Assembly: GCA_946965045.2 (NCBI GenBank) | Contig: OX337229.1 | Coordinates: 3,782,001 to 3,846,000, forward strand | From: Epithemia pelagica | Lineage: Eukaryota; Protista; Bacillariophyta | Direction of reading: 5' to 3' | Length of the DNA: 64,000 nt | Shown here: positions 50,776 to 64,000 of the stretch, piece by piece | Numbering within the stretch: the stretch's first letter is position 1 | Layout: each line of letters opens with the position of its first letter | Program-made: the position numbers and the translations under genes | Notes under the pieces: model-generated | Database searches by the model: none | Told to the model about the DNA's origin: nothing | What the model saw: only the letters and a program-made list of their open reading frames with translations

Positions 50776-51954
50776 TGTTGATGTGTTTGTTTTTGGGGGG
50801 TGTCCAAGCTCTTAGGATAGCACAGAGGACAACGTCGAACAATTTGTGACCATGACATGAGGGGAGAGTTTCTTGCTTAGGACACTTGTAGCTGTAGCTG
50901 GTTGGACCAAAGGTAGCCCAACACCCAATCGAAATCTCAAAGTTCTTGTCTTGATCTTGGTAGGTGTTGAGCGTTGAGTGCTAAATGACCAAAATATCCA
51001 GCAGTCTCCAGAGATCACTTCATTTTTCTGCAAACGGATGTTTTCATTTGAGAGCGATTGGGATTTGTTTCGTTCTTGTGCGAGATCTTGTTGTTGGTTG
51101 GGCGGGCGGAAATCGCCCAAGACCAAATAGAATGTCTCTCCCATATCTTGTGACCGAGGGAAGAATCAGTACTCCTTGAGCCACACTGAAAGAGCCCATG
51201 AGCTTCCCAACTCTCCAATAAACGCCCAAAACGAAAGATTTGAATTTTGACCGAGGTAGCTCAGGTACTCTCCAGCTAGAGGCCCGCTAGCTAGCTAGTA
51301 CTCCCTCTACTCTCTAGCTGGAAAGGCCTGGTAATCTGTAGCAAGAGGAATGGCCTCTCATAACCCGCTCTATTTCCTCTGGGTTGGATTCTCTTCTTCA
51401 GAAGAAGATGAACGGTAGAAAGAGGAAAGTTTAACCATCCAACCTGGATGAACAACTGTCATGGGAAACGTTTTGATATAGAGCAACTACCTTGTACTCC
51501 TAGTGCCTTCACGGGTGATACGGCCAGACCCTGCATTTTAGCGGCCAAATGACCATGGTGGTCTTTAACGATTACTAGCTCAATATAGCACCTCCATAGA
51601 AATGGGATGATAGAAATCATCTTCATACAATGCTTTAGGTCCCCACCGGGCACTTTTTCCATATCTGCCATCGTCATCGAGTTCTCTCTTATCATTGTAG
51701 GGTCATTTTTTTTTTGCGATTTGGCCGCTAGATTGCCCGTTGGCCGGTACATTCACCATGCGATTTCTCCACCAATACTTGACCAATTGCCATGAAATTA
51801 AAATATGTTATCGACATTAGTGTAAATGAGAACACTATTGACCCATATAGGCTATCCCCAAGCATAGGATGCCAACGAGCTTCCACACCATTGCGTCGAT
51901 TTTTCGACGTGGCACGGACCACATGAGATTAGCCTACTCATTCGTCGAAGTCAG

Positions 51955-53897
51955 CTCCATGAATACGGCCGCTCCAGACGTCCTACTTAGTAGTCTTTTA
52001 TGTTAGGCTCTACTTTAGCGATCTGAGGTATCAGATTGATCATCGGTGATATGGCCATTGAGAAAAGGCCATCCATCGATGGACGCTTCTTTTCGACGCA
52101 TCACACACAACACGAGTTTTCGACCAAAGGATGACGAGACCCGGCTCCATGGATATGGCCGCTCCAGACGTCCTACTTAGTAGTCTTTTATGTTAGGCTC
52201 TACTTTAGCAATCTGAGGTATCAGATCGATCATCGGTGATATGGCCATTGAGAAAAGGCCATCCATCGATGGACGCTTCTTTTCGACGCATCACACACAA
52301 CACGAGTTTTCGACCAAAGGATGACGAGACCCGGCTCCATGGATATGGCCGCTCCAGACGTCCTACTTAGTAGTCTTTTATGTTAGGCTCTACTTTAGCG
52401 CATCGATGGACGCTTCTTTTCGACGCATCACACACAACAGGAGTTTTCGACCAAAGGATGACGAGACCCGGCTCCATGGATATGGCCGCTCCAGACGTCC
52501 TACTTAGTAGTCTTTTATGTTAGGCTCTACTTTAGCGATCTGAGGTATCAGATCGATCATCGGTGATATGGCCATTGAGAAAAGGCCATCCATCGATGGA
52601 CGCTTCTTTTCGAAGCATCACACACAACACGAGTTTTTGACCAAAGGATGACGAGACCCGGCTCCATGGATATGGCCGCTCCAGACGTCCTACTTCTTTG
52701 ACCGTTACTATAGAGACTAAGTTAGGTTGTACAAGTTTCAGATCTGGCGTAGGGGCCATGGTCCTCATGGTCGAGGCGATCATCCATGGACGATTATTCG
52801 TCGTGCCACGGAGCACAAGGATTTTGGACCAATGGACGATGCCATGCCAATATTCGAGAATGGTCCCTCTGGACGTCCTACTTTTTTGCCCGTTACTATA
52901 GAGACTAAGTTAGGTTATACAAGTCTCAGATCCGGCGTAGGGGCCATGGTCCTCATGATCGAGGCGATCATCCATGGACAATTATTCGTCGTGCCACGGA
53001 GCACAAGGATTTTGGACCAATGGACGATGCCATGCCAATATTCGACAATGGTCCCTCTGGACGTCCTACTTTTTTGCCCGTTAGTATTGAGACTACATTA
53101 GGTTATACAAGTTTCAGAGCCGGCGTAGGGGCCATGGTTGTCAAGCTCGAAGCGATCGTTGTTGGACAATTTCTCGTCGTGCCACGCACCACAAGGTTTT
53201 TGGACCAAAAGACGACGCAACGCTGCTCGTTCAAAATGAGCTCTCGGCTCGTTGTACTTCATGGCCATTTAGTGTAGACACTAAAGTAGCTTACCGAAGT
53301 CTCAGATCTGGCGTAGGGGTCATGGTGGTCGAGCGCGATGCGTTCGTTGTTGGACAATTTCTCGTCGTGGCACAGACCACATGAGATTTCGACCAAAAGA
53401 CGACGCAACGCGGCTTGTTCAATATGAGCTCTCGGCTCATCCTACTTAGTGGACACTTGGTTTAGCTCCTACAGTAGCTTACCGAAGTCTCAGATCTGGT
53501 GTAGGGGTCATGGTGGTCGAGCGCGATGCGATCGTTGCTGGACAATTTCCCATCGTGGCATAGACCACATGAGATTTCGACCAAAAGACGACGCAACGCG
53601 GCTCGTTCAATATAAGCTCTCTGCACGTCCTACCCAATGGACACTTAGTTTAGCTCCTACAGTAGCTTACCGAAGTTTTAGATCTGGCGTAGGTGCCATG
53701 GTTGTCGAGCGCGATGCGATCGTCGATGGGCAACTTCTCGTCGTGGCACAGACCACATGAGATTTTGACCAAACGACGACGCAACGCGGCTCATTCAATA
53801 TATGCTCTCTGCACGTCCTACCCGATGGACACTTAGTTTAGCTCCTACAGTAGCTTACCCAAGCTTTAGATCTGGCGTAGGTGCCATGGTTGTTGAG
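51955..53897 (+). repeat. Left tandem array, about 10 units of 188-190 bp grading from type A to B to C
   Basis: Measured periods: 190, 190, 137 (deleted unit) and 190 for type A, then 188, 188 for B and 188, 188, 188 for C. Shared cores include GACGTCCTACTT and GACCAAA. Confidence 0.95.
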
Positions 53898-53988
53898 ATT
53901 GAATCGATCTTAAAGCAGAAACTTTTTTAACTAATGAAGCAAGTGTCTTGCCTTGTTTCTAACGTCAGCACTATATGTAGTTACTCAA

Positions 53989-54591
53989 CTATTCATCTTC
54001 AGAACTATCGCACAGGTCAACGAAGAACATAATCTTGGGCTTCTTGCGCTTGCGATGAGTCGGTGCCTTTTCCTTCGTGGTGGCTCGGCGTGGGATCGGC
54101 ACAAACAAAGAAGAGGCACGACTGTAGCGAGGTTTCCGATCGACCTTGGTGATGGTACAGGGAGGATCTTGTTGGCGGCAGCGTTTGGTTGGTCGTGGCT
54201 TGAATGGTTGAAACGGACTCGTTGCATCGTTGTGATGCAATTCGTCGTGTGGCTTGGGGGAGGCCGCAATCAAGTGACGATGCGGTGCGGCAGGAGCTGG
54301 ATCTTGGTGGGCTTCTTCTTCTTCTTCTTCTTCTTCTTCTTCTTCTTCTTCTTCTTCTTCTTCTTCTTCTTCTTCTTCTTCTTGTTCTTCTTCTTCATAA
54401 TCTTCTTCATAATCATCATCATCATCTTCTTCTTCTTCTTCATAATCATCATCTTCATCATCTTCATCTTCTTCTTCTGCTTGGGCTTGTCGTCGTTCGT
54501 TGTGGTTGCTCCGCATGGCGTCCATTTCCAACAAGACTCGTCCTACGAGTTCGGCAATGATGGCCGCATCAGACGGCGATGGCGACGACAT
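53989..54591 (-). CDS. Acidic cargo protein: poly-Glu, NLS and C-terminal SIM-like motif
   Basis: 200-aa ATG ORF with an N-terminal helix, an E/D tract, HRKRKKPK and FFVDLCDSSEDE-stop. Confidence 0.55.
   Translation of the reverse strand: MSSPSPSDAAIIAELVGRVLLEMDAMRSNHNERRQAQAEEEDEDDEDDDYEEEEEDDDDDYEEDYEEEEQEEEEEEEEEEEEEEEEEEEEEEEAHQDPAPAAPHRHLIAASPKPHDELHHNDATSPFQPFKPRPTKRCRQQDPPCTITKVDRKPRYSRASSLFVPIPRRATTKEKAPTHRKRKKPKIMFFVDLCDSSEDE
54312..54383. repeat. (CTT)n trinucleotide microsatellite, about 24 units
   Basis: An uninterrupted CTT run that encodes poly-Glu on the minus strand. Confidence 0.9.
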
Positions 54592-55098
54592 GCTTTTACT
54601 GCAAGTGATGGCAGGACTGAGGACCGACGAATCGAATCCCGCCCCGTACCAGTCAATGAAAGTGTTGGGAGGGAGAAGATCTTTTGTTTTGTGGCTGCTT
54701 TTTCGGAATTTTGTGGGAAGGCGATGCCACCAAGTAACCTATGACTCCCAAGCGTCAACTCTTCGAACACTATTCTATATAGATCAATAGTGTATAATTC
54801 ACTCCTTCTCTCCATAAATTTTCGAGCGCTAGAGTGCTTACTTGAGGGTGTCGTATCTTTCGGTCGCTCATCAGCATGATAGCCAGGCATAGCATGGGTA
54901 GTCGGAGGAGAGTTGGAGGGAATATGTCACACGTCCCCCACATTTCCCCCAATCCACAGATGAATTTTATTGCAAGTCAACTGATCGAGATCGCAGACAC
55001 AAGTGACAAGAGACGAGAGAGACAAGAAACCATGTCCGAGAGCTCATTCAACACAACAATGAACTAAAGTATTACATGCAGCTATAAACTAATAAGTC

Positions 55099-57678
55099 TC
55101 AATTGTTCAAATCGAGTCCACCGAGCACTTTCGTTGGTGAGGAGTAAGGGATGTTGTGACCGTGCTTGTAGAATTTTGCGAGACGATCATTCATCTCATA
55201 TTCGGTCGGTAATTCATAGTTGTTTCTGGGTGGGTATGTATGGACAGTCTCATCGCGTCCTTGGTACACGTAGAAATGGGCACGTGGATCACCTTGGGTA
55301 CCATTCACGAAGCCTCCAGCGTGAACGGTATCGCCTCGCGTAAGCAGCATCGTTCCATAAGGGATCTCAACCACCTCACCCAGCTGATGGAGTTTGGCAG
55401 TGTGGTTGTTACGATGCTGCCATATTTCCACGGCCATGCCGGCTTCCGTCAGGGGCATGAAGACAACAAACGGGACACGTTCTTTGAACGGTGCCTTTTT
55501 CTTTCCCACTCCCAGAGTTGTCACTCCTTACGATCTCGGGCTCTCACCGGGCAAAAGGTCATTGGAACTCGGCGTGACAACTTCCCACATGAAGTCCAGG
55601 TGCGGCTCTTGGACTTTTGGCTCTTCGGTCTTGATATAGGACAGGTGAATCTGGATTCCGTCCGCAAACGAGACGTCTGCTGCGTAGCCCATCTCCACAA
55701 GGGCTTGAGCGAGAACTGTCTTGAAATTCTTCGTCATTGCAGCTAGCTCGTCCTTAGAGTAGGCGCTAAAGTCATGGCTCATCACAAAACCTTCATTTTC
55801 CTGCATGCGCATTTGAATTTGCTTCGAGAAGTTTTGAACCCCTCGCATCCTCTTCGTGATCTTGTCCTTTCCGTGCCTGTCCGTTCCGAGACACCACGGT
55901 AGACGCAACGTATCAAGCAGCTCCTTCGCAACCACCACAAAACGTCCTCGGCGGTCACCCTCGAGATCGACCAACAAATGGGCATGCTTCCGGTGCAGTT
56001 CCTTCACTTGCTGCTCTGTAGTCGCTTGTTTGACGACGGAATCTTCAATGCGCTCGAGTGACGGAGCTGCCGATCCTCCCGGACTGGAGAGATGATGGAG
56101 TACCGGGTGATGGGAAGGATGAATGGGCTGTGGTGGTACCTGCCCATATTCTCCATAAGGTGGCTGCCCGTAGGCCGGCGAGTAATGAGGCTGACTTTGC
56201 CCTGGGTAGTGCACCGACGCGAATGCGGACTGCTGATAGTGGGGAGGAGATTGGTACAGAGGAGGTTGGCGTGGAGGATGATAGTACGGTGGAGGCTGCT
56301 GTGGATGTTGGTACGGAGGAGATTGGCCGTAGGTTTGATGGTCGTGAGCAGGGACAAGACCACGGGCTGGAGGAGGGGAACCAAGAGGAACAGGGGCAGT
56401 CAAAGTGGCAGCAATGGCAGGAGTAGTGACCTGAGGAATCGGAAAAACAACAGGAGCATCATCCACCGGACCATGTTCAGAGAGCTGCACTGGAGAATCC
56501 GCCTCACCAGAACGACGTGTATTTGGCTTCTTCTTGTTCTTCTTCTTTCCCGGCAAATCTTCGCTCTCTTCCCCACCAGTGGATCTACCACGCTTCTTTC
56601 CTGCGCCCTCGCGAGGGATGTAGGATGAAGCTTGCATTGCATTCTCCTGGGTGATGTTGTAGAACAAGAAACACTCTTTGCCCTCGTCGATGTCCCTGAT
56701 TGCGCGGACGAGAAGATTTTTTTCCACTTTAATGTTGTACATTTCATCTGCTTCGTTGGGGACTTCACCCTTGTCGTAGAGGTTGTAGTAGGGATCGTTG
56801 CTCAGATGGAATCCCATGAAAAAATAGTTCTCGTTGTCAGGTTGAACAGTGTGTGGTTCATCGTCGGCTCCAAATTGAAGCGAGTACTTGCTCCGCGGGA
56901 CAAGTTTTGTTGTTACATCCTGTCCTGCATAGACACCTATCACCTCTCCTTCTTTGTATTCCTGCGCTGCAAAAATACCAAATCCACCGTCTTTTCCGTC
57001 TTTGACTTTGACCTTCGACTTCTTCACAACAAAGAGAGGTGTTTTTCCCAGCATAATGTTGAACTCCGGGTCATGGTCGAGCGTGAAACTGACATTCGGG
57101 AATACGTTCATTTTTTTCCCTCGGTGTTGCTTCAACGGAATCCCAATTCCCACAGATCTCGGTGCATTTGTTCCGAGTTCGACACCGTACTCATCGACCT
57201 CCTTCTTGATACCTGTCCCTGATTTCCGAATGGGAGCAGCTTTCACCGAAAATGTTACGCTAATCTTCTGCGAGACGAACTCTCCGTATGCGTTGAGAAG
57301 CACATCACTTTCGTGGATTGTAGAGGCCAGATGTGTGAGTCCTTGGATGAAATTGGTACGCGGATCTCGCGTAGAGCTCTTAATGCGCTTCACTGCTGCG
57401 ACGGCGGTCCTGTAGGCCTCTTTACGTCGGTCAACGAGGCGCTGACTCATCGCCCGGTGCGTGACGCTGTAGGCTTTGTCACTATCATCCTTCAGATTGC
57501 CTCGACGACTCTCCGCAATCCTATTTTCGGTCACCATAGCAAGATCTGCGTCCGAAAGAAACCGATGATGACCCGCTGTTGGTGTCGCTTCCTTCGTTGT
57601 TGTCATCTCCTCTTCGGGCGCTTCGTCTGCTGTTGCTGTTGTTGCTGCTGTTGCTGCTGTTGCTGTTGTTGCTGCTGT

Positions 57679-57726
<48 letters not shown>

Positions 57727-57792
57727 TGGCGGTGCGGCTGCCTGTGAGACAGTGTCTACAGCATCCAAAAGAGTATCAAACCTCGTTGGCAT
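55099..57792 (-). CDS. SET domain + 2OG-Fe(II) dioxygenase-like fusion, interrupted by one in-frame TAA (55528-55530)
   Basis: SET-like GGFGIFA...GEVIGVYAG...GFHLSNDP...VRAIRDIDEGKECFLFY. Dioxygenase-like QEPHLDF...RGDTVHAGG...DPRAHFY spans both ORFs in the same frame. Confidence 0.75.
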
Positions 57793-57950
57793 CGTTTATC
57801 GTTTTATTCTCGTGTTCAACAAAAGGTTTCCTTCGTCGGTCGAACACTTGAAACGCGACGAAACACCACGATCCACAGTTGACTTGAACTAAAATTGAGT
57901 AACGCTTTTGAGAATCCAAACTTACTTATGCCCTGTGCGCATGGCAAAGC

Positions 57951-58021
57951 CACATTTTTGGTGCGTTGACTGCTGCGACTGCATTAGGCACATTTTTCGG
58001 TATGTTGACTGATGCGACTGC
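57951..58021. promoter_or_regulatory. Direct repeat (38-bp period) in the ~400-bp head-to-head spacer between the SET gene and the transposase
   Basis: CACATTTTTGGTGCGTTGACTGCTGCGACTGC and CACATTTTTCGGTATGTTGACTGATGCGACTGC. A regulatory role is inferred from position only. Confidence 0.45.
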
Positions 58022-58190
58022 GTCACAAACTGAGAGGTTTTCCCTCCAACATTGATCCACAGTTCATTTAACAACCATGTTTCCAAATCGGAAATTTGCT
58101 TTCGACCCACGATGGAAATTGTCTTCCTTTACCTTTTACATTGCTCAGAATAGAGACGCGAGACAAAGCGGTAGAGAAAGATAATCAAAG

Positions 58191-58783
58191 ATGCCCACGA
58201 CGCAGAAGGCGAAAGATCAGAAAGCACCTTTAGGAGTTGGAACGAAATGCTACATACGACAAGGAGACAAGGGCATGTATTATTATTGAGGCCCTTGATT
58301 TGCAAAAGTGGCGTGTTGCTGTAGTAGACAGGCAAGGCAATCCTACTGACCAGATAGAAGAAGCCACGTCCAAGAGACTACGGAAAATAAAGAAAGATGA
58401 GCGCTTTCCTGGGGAACCCGTACCGGACCCAGATGAAACAGCCGTAAGCACAACCGCAGCCGCAACCGAGACCGTGGCCGTAACCGCAACCGCAACCGCA
58501 GCCGCAGCCGCAGCCGCAACAACAACCACAACCACAACCGCAGCCGCAGCCGCAGCCGCAACCGAGACCGCAACTGCAACCGCAACCGCAGCCGCAGCCG
58601 CAACAACAACCACAACCACAACCGCAGCCGCAGCCGCAACCGAGACCGCAACTGCAACCGCAACCGCAGCCGCAGCCGCAACAAGAACAACAACCACAAC
58701 CGCAACTGCAACTGCAACCGAGACCGTGGCCGCAACTGCAACGGAGACCGTGGCCGTAACCGCAACCGCAACCGAGGCCGCGG

Positions 58784-58815
<32 letters not shown>

Positions 58816-61589
58816 GGAGCTGAGCCACCCGTCACGGAAGCGAGTACAATTCACCCACCGATTTTGACAGATGTGGACCAAGACGAAGACGATCCGAACA
58901 TCATAGCGCAAGCTGCGGAAGCGGAGAATGTAGACCACGGGCCCCCAACCAATGAAGGCAATGCAAATGATGAAGAGGAAGGTGGTGCTGCTGTTATTGC
59001 CGAGGCAGCGGCCGCTGCCGCCGCCGATGAGGATGACTCGTCGGTTGCAGCAGCGGATAATGAAGCCGCTGAAGATCCAACGGAGCTTGATGCAGATCTT
59101 GAGAATGAGGGGGCTGAGCAAGCCAATGCAATGGCTCTCGGGGCCCTTGTTGAACAAGACGACGACATTCACCGTCAGAGATTCGCGGCCTATAGGGCTC
59201 GAAAACAGCATCTCATTACGTCCAACTGGAAAGTGACCATGAAACCTCCAAAGAAGAAAGGGATTGAGGTCGGGGATAGAGTTTCCGAGAGGGGTGCGAA
59301 TCCTCAATACGGGATAGTCATCAGCGGAAGAAAGGTTCCAAATGCTTCTCAAGGAAACCTGTGGACGGTGCATTTTGATGGAGATGAGGAAGCGACCATA
59401 GATATCAAGCATACCCAACTCCGAAAGCCCGACGACAACCGAACTTTCGTATGGAAGATTGTACGGGATTCGTCTCCCGATGAGTCAGTCACCGAATACC
59501 AAGAGGCTGTTGGAATTGTAGGCTTCGACTTTTTGGGGAAAATGGCTCCGTACGAAATTAGCGCAGATAATATTGAGTACAAGTACCCCTTTCTTGACTT
59601 GTTGCTTCATTTCTGGCCTGGTAAGTCAGCACTCTTTTTCTTGAATGCCCTTTAGTCCATGTCTCATTTTTCTATCGATTTGCTCATCCATTTCAGGAAA
59701 TTGGCGTGATCAGCTAAAAAACCTTAATTTATTCTTAGAGCGAACAAACCCTTCTCGCCATAAAAAGAAGAAGATTCGACCCGTGACAGAGAAAGAATGG
59801 TGGGTTGTATGGGGAGTGATCCTCTCTGCCAATCCCCTCAAAAAGGGAGGAAAGGCTCTTTTCCAGAAGCCTGAACAACGACGGCTGTCGTCCACAGTGA
59901 ATCTCGGCACAAAAGGCGAAAACTTTATTGCTGAGAGTCGGTTCATGGATATCAAAGAGCATCTCAGGCATGCCTTTGCGGGACGGGACTCCACTGACCC
60001 CTGGAATGAAATCCGTCCATTGATTGACGGCTTTAATCAGAATTGCCGAGGCGTAGTTGCAGCATCCGCGACACAAGTGCTTGATGAATGCATGAGTGCA
60101 TTTCAACCACGGACAACCAAGTCATCATTGTTGCCACATCTGTCTTATGTGGCACGGAAGCCCAAACCTCTTGGAACTGAATTCAAGGTGAGTAAATGGA
60201 GAAGAGGATATTTCCAGAAGCTTTGTTACTCACTGTGTGATATTCCCTTGACAGGTGACTGCAGACACTGCGACTGGGTGTCTGACCTTTCTTGAAATCC
60301 AAGAAGGCAGACTCCCGATGCGTGCGAAGAAGTATGTTGATGGTTTGGGAGTAACTGGAGCGACAACTCTGCGACTGATTGAGGGCTCGCAATACTCAGG
60401 GCAGCAATTAAATGGTCGCTATGAATCCCAACTCGATTCCAAGCGATGCCTCTATATCGGAGACTCTTGGTTTGGAAGTGTCAAGATGGCCGAGAACCTC
60501 AAGTGTACGTGGCACGAGCAGACGGAGGACGACGATGATGATGGTCTCGTGTATTACGTGGATAAGGAGAAAGGGGTCAACCCAGACGCCCACGAAGTGA
60601 TTGGTGCCGTCAAGACCGCCCACTCTTGGTTCCCCAAGGACGAACTTGAGAAGGAGATGAAGGACTTCCCATCCGGCGCCTATCTCGTCATGGAGTGCAC
60701 GGCACCTGAGACGGGAGTAAAGCTTGTTGGAATCGGATACAAGTACAACTCACGGAAGGTCCTCCTCTTTGTTATGACTAAAAATGCGGGGAAAACGACC
60801 CCGGGATCTCCGTACATTGCTCGATTTACCGATGAGTTCGGCAATGTCAAAAGCCGGAGAGTCGAACGGCCTGACTGTATTTCCCAGTACTTCAAGTGTG
60901 CGAATAAAATTGACCGTCACAATCATCTGCGTCAGGGCATCCTCCGTCTCGAGCAGTACTGGAGAACAGTTGATCCATGGTTTCGCATTGCGACAACGGT
61001 GTTCGGAATGACAGTGTCTGATTGTTACCTTGGCATGCGTTTTCATCTGCAAGCGGAACCATTCTCGAGCTTTACGATCGAAGACTTCGCGGATATGCTC
61101 GCAAACGACCTTTTGAGAAACAACTTTTCCGATGATCGCAGCAATCGAAAGGCGGGCATGTTACCAAACATCCCAGTGACACGTCGTCCGCCGCTTTCGG
61201 TACACACTGTTGGGCCCTCAGCTTCTGTGCCATCGAGCGTGCACAATGTGGGGGGGGGGGGGGGGGGGGGGAATGCATCTCCTAACTCCATGGTGTCTGA
61301 TCTGACCAATGATTCACTGGTTTGTCATGAGGTTGTGGAACAGGCAGAAAAGTCTTTATCTGACCAGCGGCCCGTGAAGCGCAAATGTGTTATTTGTAAA
61401 AATGACACGAGATCAATGTGCGGGCATCCAACATGCTGCAATATAATCAAGATGTTTCGTGGGGAAGCCAAAGTTGGAGTTCCTTTGTGTAAGCCCTCCA
61501 TGGGTATTCGTCGCGGGCAAGTGCGGACTTGCCTTGAAGAGCACATGTGCCGTGTTATTGCGGCAAGCCAAAAGGAAAACCACAACTGA
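58191..61589 (+). CDS. piggyBac-like transposase (DDE_Tnp_1_7 type), ~1084 aa if one extra base near 58271 is removed; introns 59621-59696 and 60188-60254
   Basis: VLDECM, RKPKPLGTEFK|VTAD, YIGDSWFGS, IGAVK and NKIDRHNH give the catalytic D/D/D. The C-terminal Cys-rich domain is CVIC...CGHPTC...PLC...CLEEH. Confidence 0.88.
58445..58815 (+). repeat. GCA/GCC/ACC/ACA codon-repeat tract (Ala/Thr-rich, with internal higher-order duplications)
   Basis: Repeated ACCGCAGCCGCAGCCGCAACAACAACCACA and ACCGAGACCG blocks. Confidence 0.9.
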
Positions 61590-61720
61590 TTTGTCCCGAA
61601 CATGAGAACCAGGTCGACTCTACATTGTTTAATGTCTTTGCATATTAATAAATTATGATTAGGAGCTTAGTAACATCGAAATCTTAGTACTCAAGTGTAA
61701 TATGCTATGGGATCCTACGA

Positions 61721-62263
61721 CTAATAGGTTCGAACGCTCTCCTGATGGGGCCACGTCTCTGTCGCTTTATCAAAAAGTGACATGAACGTAGCCATCCCAA
61801 CAACACTCATCCGCACAGTAATGACCATGGGCCCCATGGCCATCTTGGTATCCAAAGAATGAGCCGGCTCAATCGTGAGCTCTCCTTTGACAAGGGAACC
61901 ACTCTTGGAACGGAACTTCTTGGAGCGTATTTTCTTGTAGATCGATCCGACTGGGATGACGACATCAGGCATCAAATCATCCATCTTCTCCCGACCAAAT
62001 GCGCTAATTGATAGCATCCCACCGTTGCTCCCGTACTTGGAGCGCTGTAAAAGAACGACACCTCGATCCACCACAAGCGTCCCCTTTCCACCTTTCCCAT
62101 CACGAGCACGAGCGGCGTCTTGGACGTACACATTCACGCCCGCTTTGCCATAGATCGTTGCTCGGCTACCATGGAGCTGAATCTCGCTCCCGTCATCTTG
62201 CATCACGTTGAACCCATTTGCAAGGAGAAGTCTATTGCGCGATTCGTGCTCGTATTCCGACAT
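61721..62263 (-). CDS. Hypothetical 180-aa beta-rich cargo protein (probable ATG 62263)
   Basis: Open frame with alternating hydrophobic strands and a terminal helix. No confident family assignment. Confidence 0.55.
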   Translation of the reverse strand: MSEYEHESRNRLLLANGFNVMQDDGSEIQLHGSRATIYGKAGVNVYVQDAARARDGKGGKGTLVVDRGVVLLQRSKYGSNGGMLSISAFGREKMDDLMPDVVIPVGSIYKKIRSKKFRSKSGSLVKGELTIEPAHSLDTKMAMGPMVITVRMSVVGMATFMSLFDKATETWPHQESVRTY

Positions 62264-62752
62264 CGTCCTTCGTCCATCGTAAATGTAGAAAATATGAAGG
62301 GTGAGACGCGATGAGTCGCACAGTGCAAAACAAGTTTGAGATAGGCACTTATCTCTTTTCCTACTCCTTATTGGATTGTCAAATGAAAAGTCTTTAGTTA
62401 GAGGAGCTTGCCACTCAGATGGCCGATCAATTCTCTCCTCTCTGCACGAAAGGACGAACACGTCCGTGGTATCCAGTCGGCTTGCATAAAAATGCAGTTG
62501 TGGTTTGGGGGAAACGGTGGGGACTTTCTACAATTGCCACTCGGGATTAATTAAAACAACGTGACGATATGCTTAAGAAAAGTTCCATCCGTTGAAGCGC
62601 GTGCCCTCCACAATTTACAGCGCGACAAGATTTTAATGTGAGACGACTGGTCGATCATCAATCAAATAACAAGAGCAACCTTCCCATAAAGGCATAAAGG
62701 ACAGCAAGGAAAAGAAAACAGACGACAAAAGCAAGGACAAAGAAAGAAAGAC

Positions 62753-63265
62753 ATGTCGCTCTACATCGACAAGCGCCGTGTTAGTGCGAGGCTCCAAGGC
62801 CGTACGACCAAAAGTGTTGTCACAACTGGTGCATCCAAACCCACTATGCGCCCAACCCAAAAAGGTGCCCACAAGAACAACAAGAACAACAACAACGACA
62901 ACAATGCGAAAGCCGTAGATACGGAGAAGAAGAAGGAGATCTTGCTCGGGTGTGATGCAATTGGTGTGGAAATGAGTCGATCATCAATCCTCAAGATGAG
63001 AAACGATTTCCTGGAACATGGATCGAACGGAGGGAGCAACACTCCAGTGCGCCATTCCAAGATCAATTTTGCTGATGAGATCAGCCCCATCCCTGAAGAC
63101 AATCAGAAGCCTTCGTCCCGTTTATCCACCCTGAGCACCGCCTCCATACGTAGCCTCAAGAGTGCATCTTCCCGTGGAACTGCTGTAGACAGCGATCTTT
63201 CGTTCGACTTTGCCGAGACTCAACAAGATGACGGTGACTTCCTCTTCAACACCTATGGAAAATAA
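62753..63265 (+). CDS. Hypothetical 170-aa disordered cargo protein
   Basis: ATG ORF divergent from the 61721-62263 gene. Basic N-terminus with RRVSARLQ and a KINF motif. Confidence 0.5.
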   Translation: MSLYIDKRRVSARLQGRTTKSVVTTGASKPTMRPTQKGAHKNNKNNNNDNNAKAVDTEKKKEILLGCDAIGVEMSRSSILKMRNDFLEHGSNGGSNTPVRHSKINFADEISPIPEDNQKPSSRLSTLSTASIRSLKSASSRGTAVDSDLSFDFAETQQDDGDFLFNTYGK

Positions 63266-63344
63266 ATGATAGTTAAGCCTGTCAAGTATAGCAATGACGA
63301 TAAATATGGAAACATAAGCTTTAGAGTTGGATCATAGCGCGGCT

Positions 63345-64000
63345 TCGTCCATTGGTCCAAAATCCTTGTGCTCCGTAGCACGACGAATGATTGTCCATGG
63401 ATGATCGCCTCGATCATGAGGACCATGGCCCCTAAGCCGGATCTGAGACTTGTGTAACCTAACTTAGTCTCTATAGTAACAAGCAAAAAAGTAGGACGTC
63501 CAGAGGGACCATTGTCGAATATTGGCATGGCATCGTCCATTGGTCCAAAATCCTTGTGCTCCGTGGCACGACGAATGATTGTCCATGGATGATCGCCTCG
63601 ATCATGAGGACCATGGCCCCTACGCCGGATCTGAGACTTGTATAACCTAACTTAGTCTCTATAGTAAGGGGCAAAAAAGTAGGACGTCCAGAGGGACCAT
63701 TCTCGAATATTGGCATGGCATCGTCCATTGGTCCAAAATCCTTGTGCTTGGTGGCACAACGAATGATTGTCCATGGATGATCGCCTCGATCATGAGGACC
63801 ATGGCCCCTACGCCGGATCTGAGACTTGTATAACCTAACTTAGTCTCTATAGTAACGGTCAAAGAAGTAGGACGTCTGGAGCGGCCGTATCCATGGAGCC
63901 GGGTCTCGTCATCCTTTGGTCAAAAACTCGTGTTGTGTGTGATGCTTCGAAAAGAAGCGTCCATCGATGGATGGCCTTTTCTCAATGGCCATATCACCGA
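63345..64000 (-). repeat. Right tandem array, inverted relative to the left array: three type-B units then type A, cut by the window edge
   Basis: CGTCCATTGGTCCAAAATCC at 63346, 63534 and 63722 (period 188). From about 63860 the sequence is the reverse complement of the left A/B junction and type A. Confidence 0.95.

Follow-up and report, generated by a model that had tools for sequence, protein, structure and literature searches.

Probable recent inactivation of a SET-oxygenase fusion gene carried by a piggyBac-type transposon in Epithemia pelagica

A stretch of 64,000 nucleotides of the Epithemia pelagica genome (assembly GCA_946965045.2, contig OX337229.1, positions 3,782,001 to 3,846,000, forward strand; hereafter the window) contains, at positions 55099-57792, a gene in which a SET domain is fused to a 2-oxoglutarate (2OG)/Fe(II) oxygenase domain and which is interrupted by one in-frame TAA. 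A sequence-only reading of the window had described it as a methyl writer/eraser or hydroxylase fusion, either recently inactivated or expressed through readthrough or unusual splicing. By taking into account the copies of the gene in the rest of the genome, the locus is now very probably to be regarded as a recently inactivated copy of a cargo gene of a piggyBac-type DNA transposon. The transposon context, overlooked in the earlier reading, alters the meaning of the stop, which is the ordinary decay of one copy. The gene and the interrupting codon are located as follows.

55099..57792, minus strand: whole SET + 2OG/Fe(II) oxygenase fusion gene, pseudogene copy
55531-57792, minus strand: upstream open reading frame (ORF), 754 amino acids, ATG start
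55102-55524, minus strand: downstream ORF, 141 amino acids from GTG
55528..55530, minus strand: private nonsense codon TAA, which is AAA (Lys) in three sister copies

The two ORFs share one frame, with TAA-GGA as the spacer, and give 897 codons if read through, so that ORFs, frame and motif positions are all as the sequence-only reading had them. The continuity of the frame is not due to chance: paralogues read straight through the position of the stop, and none of the H/D/H/R residues of the oxygenase varies among 36 homologues. Searching the genome of the window (60.5 Mb, 23 contigs) at the DNA level revealed three further copies at approximately 99% identity, five at approximately 70% and about 25 shorter and more distant matches, and tblastn gave 49 genome matches, most with open frames of 860-993 amino acids; approximately 40 further diverged paralogues have the same architecture. 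Two of the approximately 99% identical sister copies are open, with frames of 895-897 codons or 894-896 amino acids (intact copies at C2:1495214-1497895, on the contig of the window, and C18:1268712-1271399), and the third, on C5, is interrupted by a different stop of its own. The comparison of the codon with these paralogous copies, which the earlier reading had proposed, returned AAA in all three and TAA only in the window, where the T of the stop codon is the plus-strand A at 55530. A single A>T change would have converted the Lys codon into the stop in the window copy, in agreement with the 'recently inactivated' arm of the earlier alternative. The nonsense change is one of 22 private substitutions that the window copy carries over 4 kb.

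As a separate observation, approximately 14 of these 22 substitutions (window 53824-57450) are G>A or C>T with respect to the three sister copies, the bias that deamination of methylated cytosines would be expected to leave; the change that gave the stop is a transversion, A>T.

The HLD motif lies upstream of the stop; downstream of it come the distal His (in VHAGG) and the Arg (in PRAHFY). The stop falls in a variable basic insert between the strand carrying HxD and the next conserved strand, and so cuts the former off from the remainder of the barrel, which bears out the earlier statement that catalytic residues lie on either side of the stop and that neither half suffices for the fold. Any product of the window copy would keep the SET domain and lack the distal His and the Arg, and because these two residues are lost no oxygenase function would be possible from it.

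That a full-length protein is still made from the window copy, by readthrough, recoding or an unconventional intron, is hardly credible, although the perfect continuity of the frame and the GTAAG overlapping the stop speak for it. Since the sister copies read TCGAAAGGAG where the window has GTAAG, the latter is a product of the A>T change; as the sister copies have AAA and no GT there, the ancestral site had no intron and no recoding signal. Splicing to the closest acceptor-like CAG downstream would excise 115 nucleotides, out of frame, and by our own count would take out the conserved PF..F.PL and W strands. Moreover, genuine introns of the element are canonical GT-AG ones (e.g. the 76-nucleotide intron at 59621-59696), and the ORFs of the family end at ordinary stop codons. 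A rescue by splicing was rejected, since it would need an acceptor that breaks the frame and a donor that the mutation itself made, and an alternative genetic code was rejected on account of the sense codon found at the site in the sister copies. The readthrough and splicing arm of the earlier alternative was thus abandoned.

The carrier of the gene extends beyond the right end of the window, and its main parts are listed here.

51497..64000, running 1252 bp past the window end to C2:3847252: piggyBac-type DNA transposon of approximately 13,756 bp, from whole-length copies, terminal inverted repeats (TIRs) and transposase
51497..53897: left TIR array of approximately 188-190-bp tandem sub-repeats (self-blast)
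63342..64000, on to 65252: right TIR array (self-blast)
58234..61586, plus strand, opposite to the cargo gene and adjoining it: transposase gene with at least three exons (PF13843 match at 59726-60139)
59621..59696, plus strand: 76-nucleotide GT-AG intron joining the first two transposase ORFs in frame (junction ...HFWPG/NWRDQ...)

Full copies of the element are found at C18:1260978-1275028 and C2:1487867-1501902 with 96-98% identity. In the self-blast, 51497-53406 matches 65252-63342 in inverted orientation (85%) with internal register shifts of 190 bp, the arrays measuring approximately 2 kb, and the tips of the element read CTAG followed by TGCCTTCACGGG... The middle exon of the transposase gene matches PF13843 (DDE_Tnp_1_7; E 2.8e-9, 37.2 bits against a cut-off of 22.4). 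A family of elements at 70% identity (e.g. C1:2255477-2269032, 13.6 kb) matches the present one in gene content, gene order and tips (CTAG followed by TGCC), with the three transposase ORF pieces conserved at 41-64% at the amino acid level. The transposase is distributed over three ORFs in different frames, the third starting after an acceptor-like TTGACAG at approximately 60255.

Two more distant subfamilies of the cargo gene (3 and 4) ride a different element of 9720 bp (C1:3340346-3350065); two copies, this one and C16:2466879-2476607, have TIRs of 36 bp and a TA on either side. This second carrier also encodes a 1120-residue ORF, for which no Pfam or PDB sequence match was obtained and whose look-alikes, by protein-language-model features only, are DDE_3 (Tc1/mariner-type) transposases. 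The same cargo is therefore present on a second, unrelated transposon type. A comparison of subfamilies 3 and 4 (C1:3344354-3347254 versus C16:645744-648701) gave 97% identity over transposase, N-terminus and SET and approximately 90% over linker and oxygenase, a pattern that is a recombinant or gene-conversion mosaic.

Instead of cargo, the gene could in principle belong to a host multigene family with transposons as mere neighbours, given that the oxygenase has stand-alone homologues which are ordinary genes of the host. Such a family is highly improbable here, because every full-length copy examined lies inside a TIR-bounded unit, with 92-99% identity over the whole 9.7-14 kb and different flanks, and because the SET module is absent from the 172 fetched homologues from outside, same-lineage fragments excepted.

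The copies also carry the record of selection on the cargo gene. Eleven full-length paralogues in four subfamilies (41-51% amino acid identity to family 1) align from end to end, so that the homologues do join the two halves separated by the stop in the window. Invariant across them are GFG, Y-x-G, N-D, F-Y-N, Q-E-P-H-x-D, T-V-H-A-G-G and P-R-A-H-F-Y. The dN/dS values between subfamilies are 0.18-0.23 for the SET domain and 0.22-0.30 for the oxygenase, and at least 0.57 for the linker; the SET and oxygenase domains have thus been kept by selection while the elements diversified. With a dN/dS of 0.2-0.4 between subfamilies, this purifying selection points to a functional cargo gene.

When intact, the gene consists of one intronless ORF for approximately 895 residues. 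Protein analyses across the stop were made on intact paralogues in place of the broken window ORF. The order of the protein regions is an N-terminal region (conserved over approximately 190 residues, with no Pfam match), the SET domain, a basic patch resembling a nuclear-localization signal (NLS), a variable linker rich in Pro, Gln and His, and a C-terminal oxygenase domain of approximately 320 residues. The positions of domains and motifs in the window are the following.

56656..56985, minus strand: SET domain (Pfam, residues 270-379; PF00856, 24.6 bits against a cut-off of 22.4)
56977-56985, minus strand: SET motif GFG
56794-56808, minus strand: SET motif HLSND (ND, not NH)
56656-56667, minus strand: SET motif LFYN
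56524..56601, minus strand: basic bipartite, NLS-like stretch KKRGR ... KKKNKKK, K/R columns invariant in four subfamilies
55102..56058, minus strand: 2OG/Fe(II) oxygenase domain, with the stop inside its variable basic insert (AlphaFold, Foldseek, VIA)
55594..55602, minus strand: H-x-D iron ligands, H731 and D733 of the 754-residue ORF, invariant in 36 homologues
55321..55323, minus strand: distal iron-ligand His (VHAGG), invariant, aligned to FtmOx1 His205
55282..55284, minus strand: Arg of R-x-H-x-Y, presumed ligand of the 2OG C5-carboxylate, invariant

The SET assignment derives from PF00856, which passes its cut-off in two of the three subfamilies scanned (24.6 bits for the window ORF and 27.5 bits for family 3), the SET domain of family 2 being under the Pfam reporting threshold. 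The motifs of the S-adenosylmethionine pocket, GFG and Y-x-G, and the C-terminal Tyr motif (E)L-x-L-F-Y-N are invariant across the four subfamilies, and a SET profile search matched the PR/SET domains of PRDM3 (1.7e-5) and PRDM16 and the SET domains of EZH2 (1.2e-3) and MLL1. The basic stretch may act as a nuclear-localization signal.

The oxygenase domain was not recognized by sequence: PDB and Pfam searches with the two pieces of the window ORF and with the intact C-terminal domain returned nothing for it. A word-index protein search returned only 5 and 2 relatives of the same lineage, and an exhaustive profile search was needed, which identified 425 relatives among 1.84 billion representative proteins, 45 of them at E<=1e-30; a scan for Pfam domains in the top 60 found one Med26 and no other. 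In a 36-sequence alignment Q-x-P-H-x-D, D-x-x-H-x-G and R-x-H are invariant (Q150, H153, D155, H246, R259 and H261 of the domain). A PDB profile match aligns the VHAGG..PR segment with the FtmOx1 strand carrying His205, an iron ligand of that enzyme, and the usual spacing between His and Arg in 2OG oxygenases suggests, by analogy, that the Arg would bind the C5-carboxylate of 2OG.

A first AlphaFold model, built with 8 sequences, was poor (pLDDT 56), with fold matches that were all 2OG oxygenases and not significant. It was superseded by a model of an intact paralogue from the 36-sequence alignment (pLDDT 87.6, pTM 0.87). With the latter, Foldseek against the PDB gave 220 matches at E<=1e-3, the best being FtmOx1, KanJ, AndA, SnoN and AsqJ at approximately 3e-6, and in a VIA structural search against representatives the top 50 chains were all 2OG/Fe(II) oxygenases (AsqJ, Z 11.5, with a root mean square deviation of 3.6 over 196 residues; a bacterial prolyl hydroxylase, Z 11.0; KanJ, Z 10.9). 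Its ESM Atlas neighbours belong to PhyH and 2OG-FeII_Oxy clusters. The predicted fold is accordingly the double-stranded beta-helix of the 2OG/Fe(II) oxygenase superfamily, which is the fold part of what the sequence-only reading had asked of a structure prediction. PhyH-type structures top the matches, tied with prolyl hydroxylases, and the domain belongs to an unannotated family nearest to PhyH-type and prolyl-hydroxylase-type enzymes, being neither JmjC nor TET/JBP as judged from Pfam and fold ranking.

These results bear on the possibility of a true writer/eraser pair, in which the oxygenase would be a lysine demethylase or a TET-like 5-methylcytosine oxidase acting against the SET mark or DNA methylation. 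Having a SET and an oxygenase domain on one chain invites such a proposal, as do the basic variable insert, the link of one host homologue to a TFIIS-N domain, the presence of TET/JBP or SET genes on transposons elsewhere (PMC12730594) and the JmjC-SET fusions on record in cellular proteins (PMC2938197). However, Pfam gives no match to JmjC or Tet_JBP, the 50 chains that best fit the confident model include no JmjC and no TET (NgTET1 was 42nd with the poorer first one), and in structure the domain comes closest to small-molecule enzymes of the PhyH type and to prolyl hydroxylases. A true writer/eraser pair is therefore unlikely; of the earlier proposal, the SET domain and the 2OG oxygenase fold stand, and the eraser is left without support from Pfam and fold ranking.

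Several points weigh against the reading of the locus as a recently inactivated transposon cargo gene with two catalytic domains. For the oxygenase, no Pfam family recognizes the domain (E<=1), including PhyH PF05721, TET/JBP PF12851 and JmjC PF02373. For the SET domain, Asp replaces the His of the canonical NH motif in every paralogue (H-L-x-N-D, with the Asn retained) and the post-SET Cys cluster is absent, so that methyltransferase activity is not assured; the alignment indicates that ND is a fixed trait of the family, not decay. For the carrier, the PF13843 match is limited to profile positions 16-149, and CTAG, not the canonical TTAA, is found on both sides of all four elements examined (window 51493-51500 with the right end at approximately 65249-65256, C18:1260978/1275028, C2:1487867/1501902 and C1:2255477/2269032). 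The CTAG may be a target duplication of an unusual kind or the tip of the TIR; because CTAG is palindromic, only an empty site could tell the two apart. For the stop, the three public runs holding the stretch (one organism, Logan contigs) include none recorded as RNA, and the Logan contigs of these runs (X1-X3) merge the four copies into the majority form, AAA, so that the base at 55530 comes from the assembly only.

The last point raises the question of whether the window copy is in fact intact and the TAA an error of assembly or consensus, the repeat having four copies. The public contigs over the region read the AAA form only, and polishing errors do occur in repeats of 99% identity. On the other hand, Logan contigs drop minority variants, and their AAA is thus uninformative on the window copy, neither confirming nor refuting the T of the stop. 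The 21 other private substitutions over 4 kb mean that the window copy was separately resolved, and the stops that the C5 family-1 copy and copies of other subfamilies have of their own mean that decay is usual here. Such an error is very unlikely, and the recently inactivated cargo gene is retained as the best explanation.

With regard to the origin of the oxygenase, a maximum-likelihood tree places the four transposon-borne domains in one clade (100/100). The same genome contains a stand-alone oxygenase gene (C1:6216190-6217233, 348 amino acids, no SET, 38% identity; C1:6216205-6217146 in the tree), which groups with the hypothetical protein KAL7564762.1 of the diatom Epithemia clementina (96/98) and is likely the host lineage behind the cargo domain. 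Stand-alone homologues on metagenomic eukaryote contigs have housekeeping neighbours (MutS/Smr, UGGT, PP2C, PGK) and no transposase nearby. One of the host-type metagenomic homologues (contig positions 10001-11572), also among housekeeping neighbours, combines a TFIIS-N/Med26 domain with the oxygenase domain, which hints that the oxygenase family works with the transcription machinery. The N-terminal/SET module was found in none of the 172 homologues fetched from other sources, with the same exception of same-lineage fragments. The simplest reading would be a single capture of a nuclear oxygenase from a host gene family, its fusion to the SET module and later moves between transposon types. 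Cyanophage dioxygenase homologues have been remarked on in diatoms (PMC2938197); a tblastn search of phage genomes prompted by that remark returned nothing.

The intact protein may have a nuclear role that benefits the element, with chromatin or other nuclear proteins as its target, for example by countering or steering host silencing. Such a nuclear or chromatin role is possible and is put forward tentatively, at somewhat less than even chances. The more specific picture is doubtful: a bifunctional nuclear enzyme would pair a SET methyltransferase with a new clade of protein- or nucleic-acid-directed 2OG oxygenases, captured from a transcription-linked host family and passed between piggyBac-type and Tc1/mariner-type elements, and would rewrite host silencing marks on the element's own chromatin.

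Other parts of the piggyBac-type element are conserved in addition to the cargo and transposase genes.

61724..62527, minus strand: conserved 268-residue element ORF, 57-64% amino acid identity to the family-2 element, no Pfam match
62690..63262, plus strand: conserved 191-residue element ORF, 51% amino acid identity to the family-2 element, no Pfam match
53992..54738, minus strand: acidic poly-Glu ORF of 249 residues, in all three full copies, low-complexity Pfam hits only

A shorter unit at C3:2414180-2420467 has both TIR arrays but no more than 3.2 kb from the right-hand side of the element (98% identical); without the SET-oxygenase gene, it probably represents a non-autonomous form that arose by internal deletion. 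Genome-wide, at least 119 matches to the piggyBac transposase family were counted, many with open frames of 730-1189 amino acids; piggyBac-type elements are unusually abundant and diverse in the Epithemia pelagica genome.

Comparison with known systems helps to place the fusion. With PhyH-type enzymes (FtmOx1, AsqJ, KanJ, AndA) and prolyl 4-hydroxylases the oxygenase shares the predicted double-stranded beta-helix, the HxD...H triad and the Arg (Z 10.4-11.5), and with FtmOx1 also a local sequence match at the distal-His strand. It differs from both groups in the lack of a PF05721 or P4H match, in the low identity (8-15%), in the large basic insert after the HxD strand and in its nuclear or transposon context, as opposed to secondary metabolism. 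The SET domain has the GxG, YxG and C-terminal Tyr motifs of the PRDM PR/SET and EZH2/MLL SET domains, from which it is set apart by ND in place of NH and by the absence of pre-SET and post-SET zinc clusters. The first carrier resembles canonical piggyBac in the DDE_Tnp_1_7 match above cut-off and in TIRs beginning C-CTAG-, piggyBac TIRs beginning CCCTAG. It departs from canonical piggyBac in its size of 14 kb, the approximately 2-kb TIR arrays of 190-bp units, several extra genes, CTAG instead of TTAA at the flanks and a Pfam profile matched in part only.

Among transposons with epigenetic enzymes, several lineages of fungal DNA transposons, KDZ and others, carry TET/JBP dioxygenases (PMC12730594). 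As in these, a 2OG/Fe(II) oxygenase cargo lies here beside a transposase and is common to unrelated transposon lineages, and the role proposed is that of countering epigenetic silencing; in contrast to these, the present oxygenase is not TET/JBP by Pfam and fold rank, is fused to SET and rides on piggyBac-type and TA-flanked carriers in what is probably a diatom. In the oomycete Phytophthora, SET genes are carried by HarbingerS and MuDR elements, according to Repbase Reports as cited in PMC12730594. These are likewise stramenopile DNA transposons with a gene of the SET histone-methyltransferase type, in other transposon superfamilies and, as far as that secondary citation goes, with no oxygenase fusion reported. 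Transposons with epigenetic enzymes are already known, and what differs here is the presence of two catalytic domains on one chain, an undescribed oxygenase family and the piggyBac-type and TA-flanked carriers.

The fusion gene extends, by a stramenopile example, the small set of transposons with chromatin- or DNA-modifying enzymes, and exposes an unannotated 2OG-oxygenase family whose host members are found among housekeeping genes. If the protein does act on silencing marks, it would provide a tractable handle on the conflict between transposons and host chromatin in diatoms.

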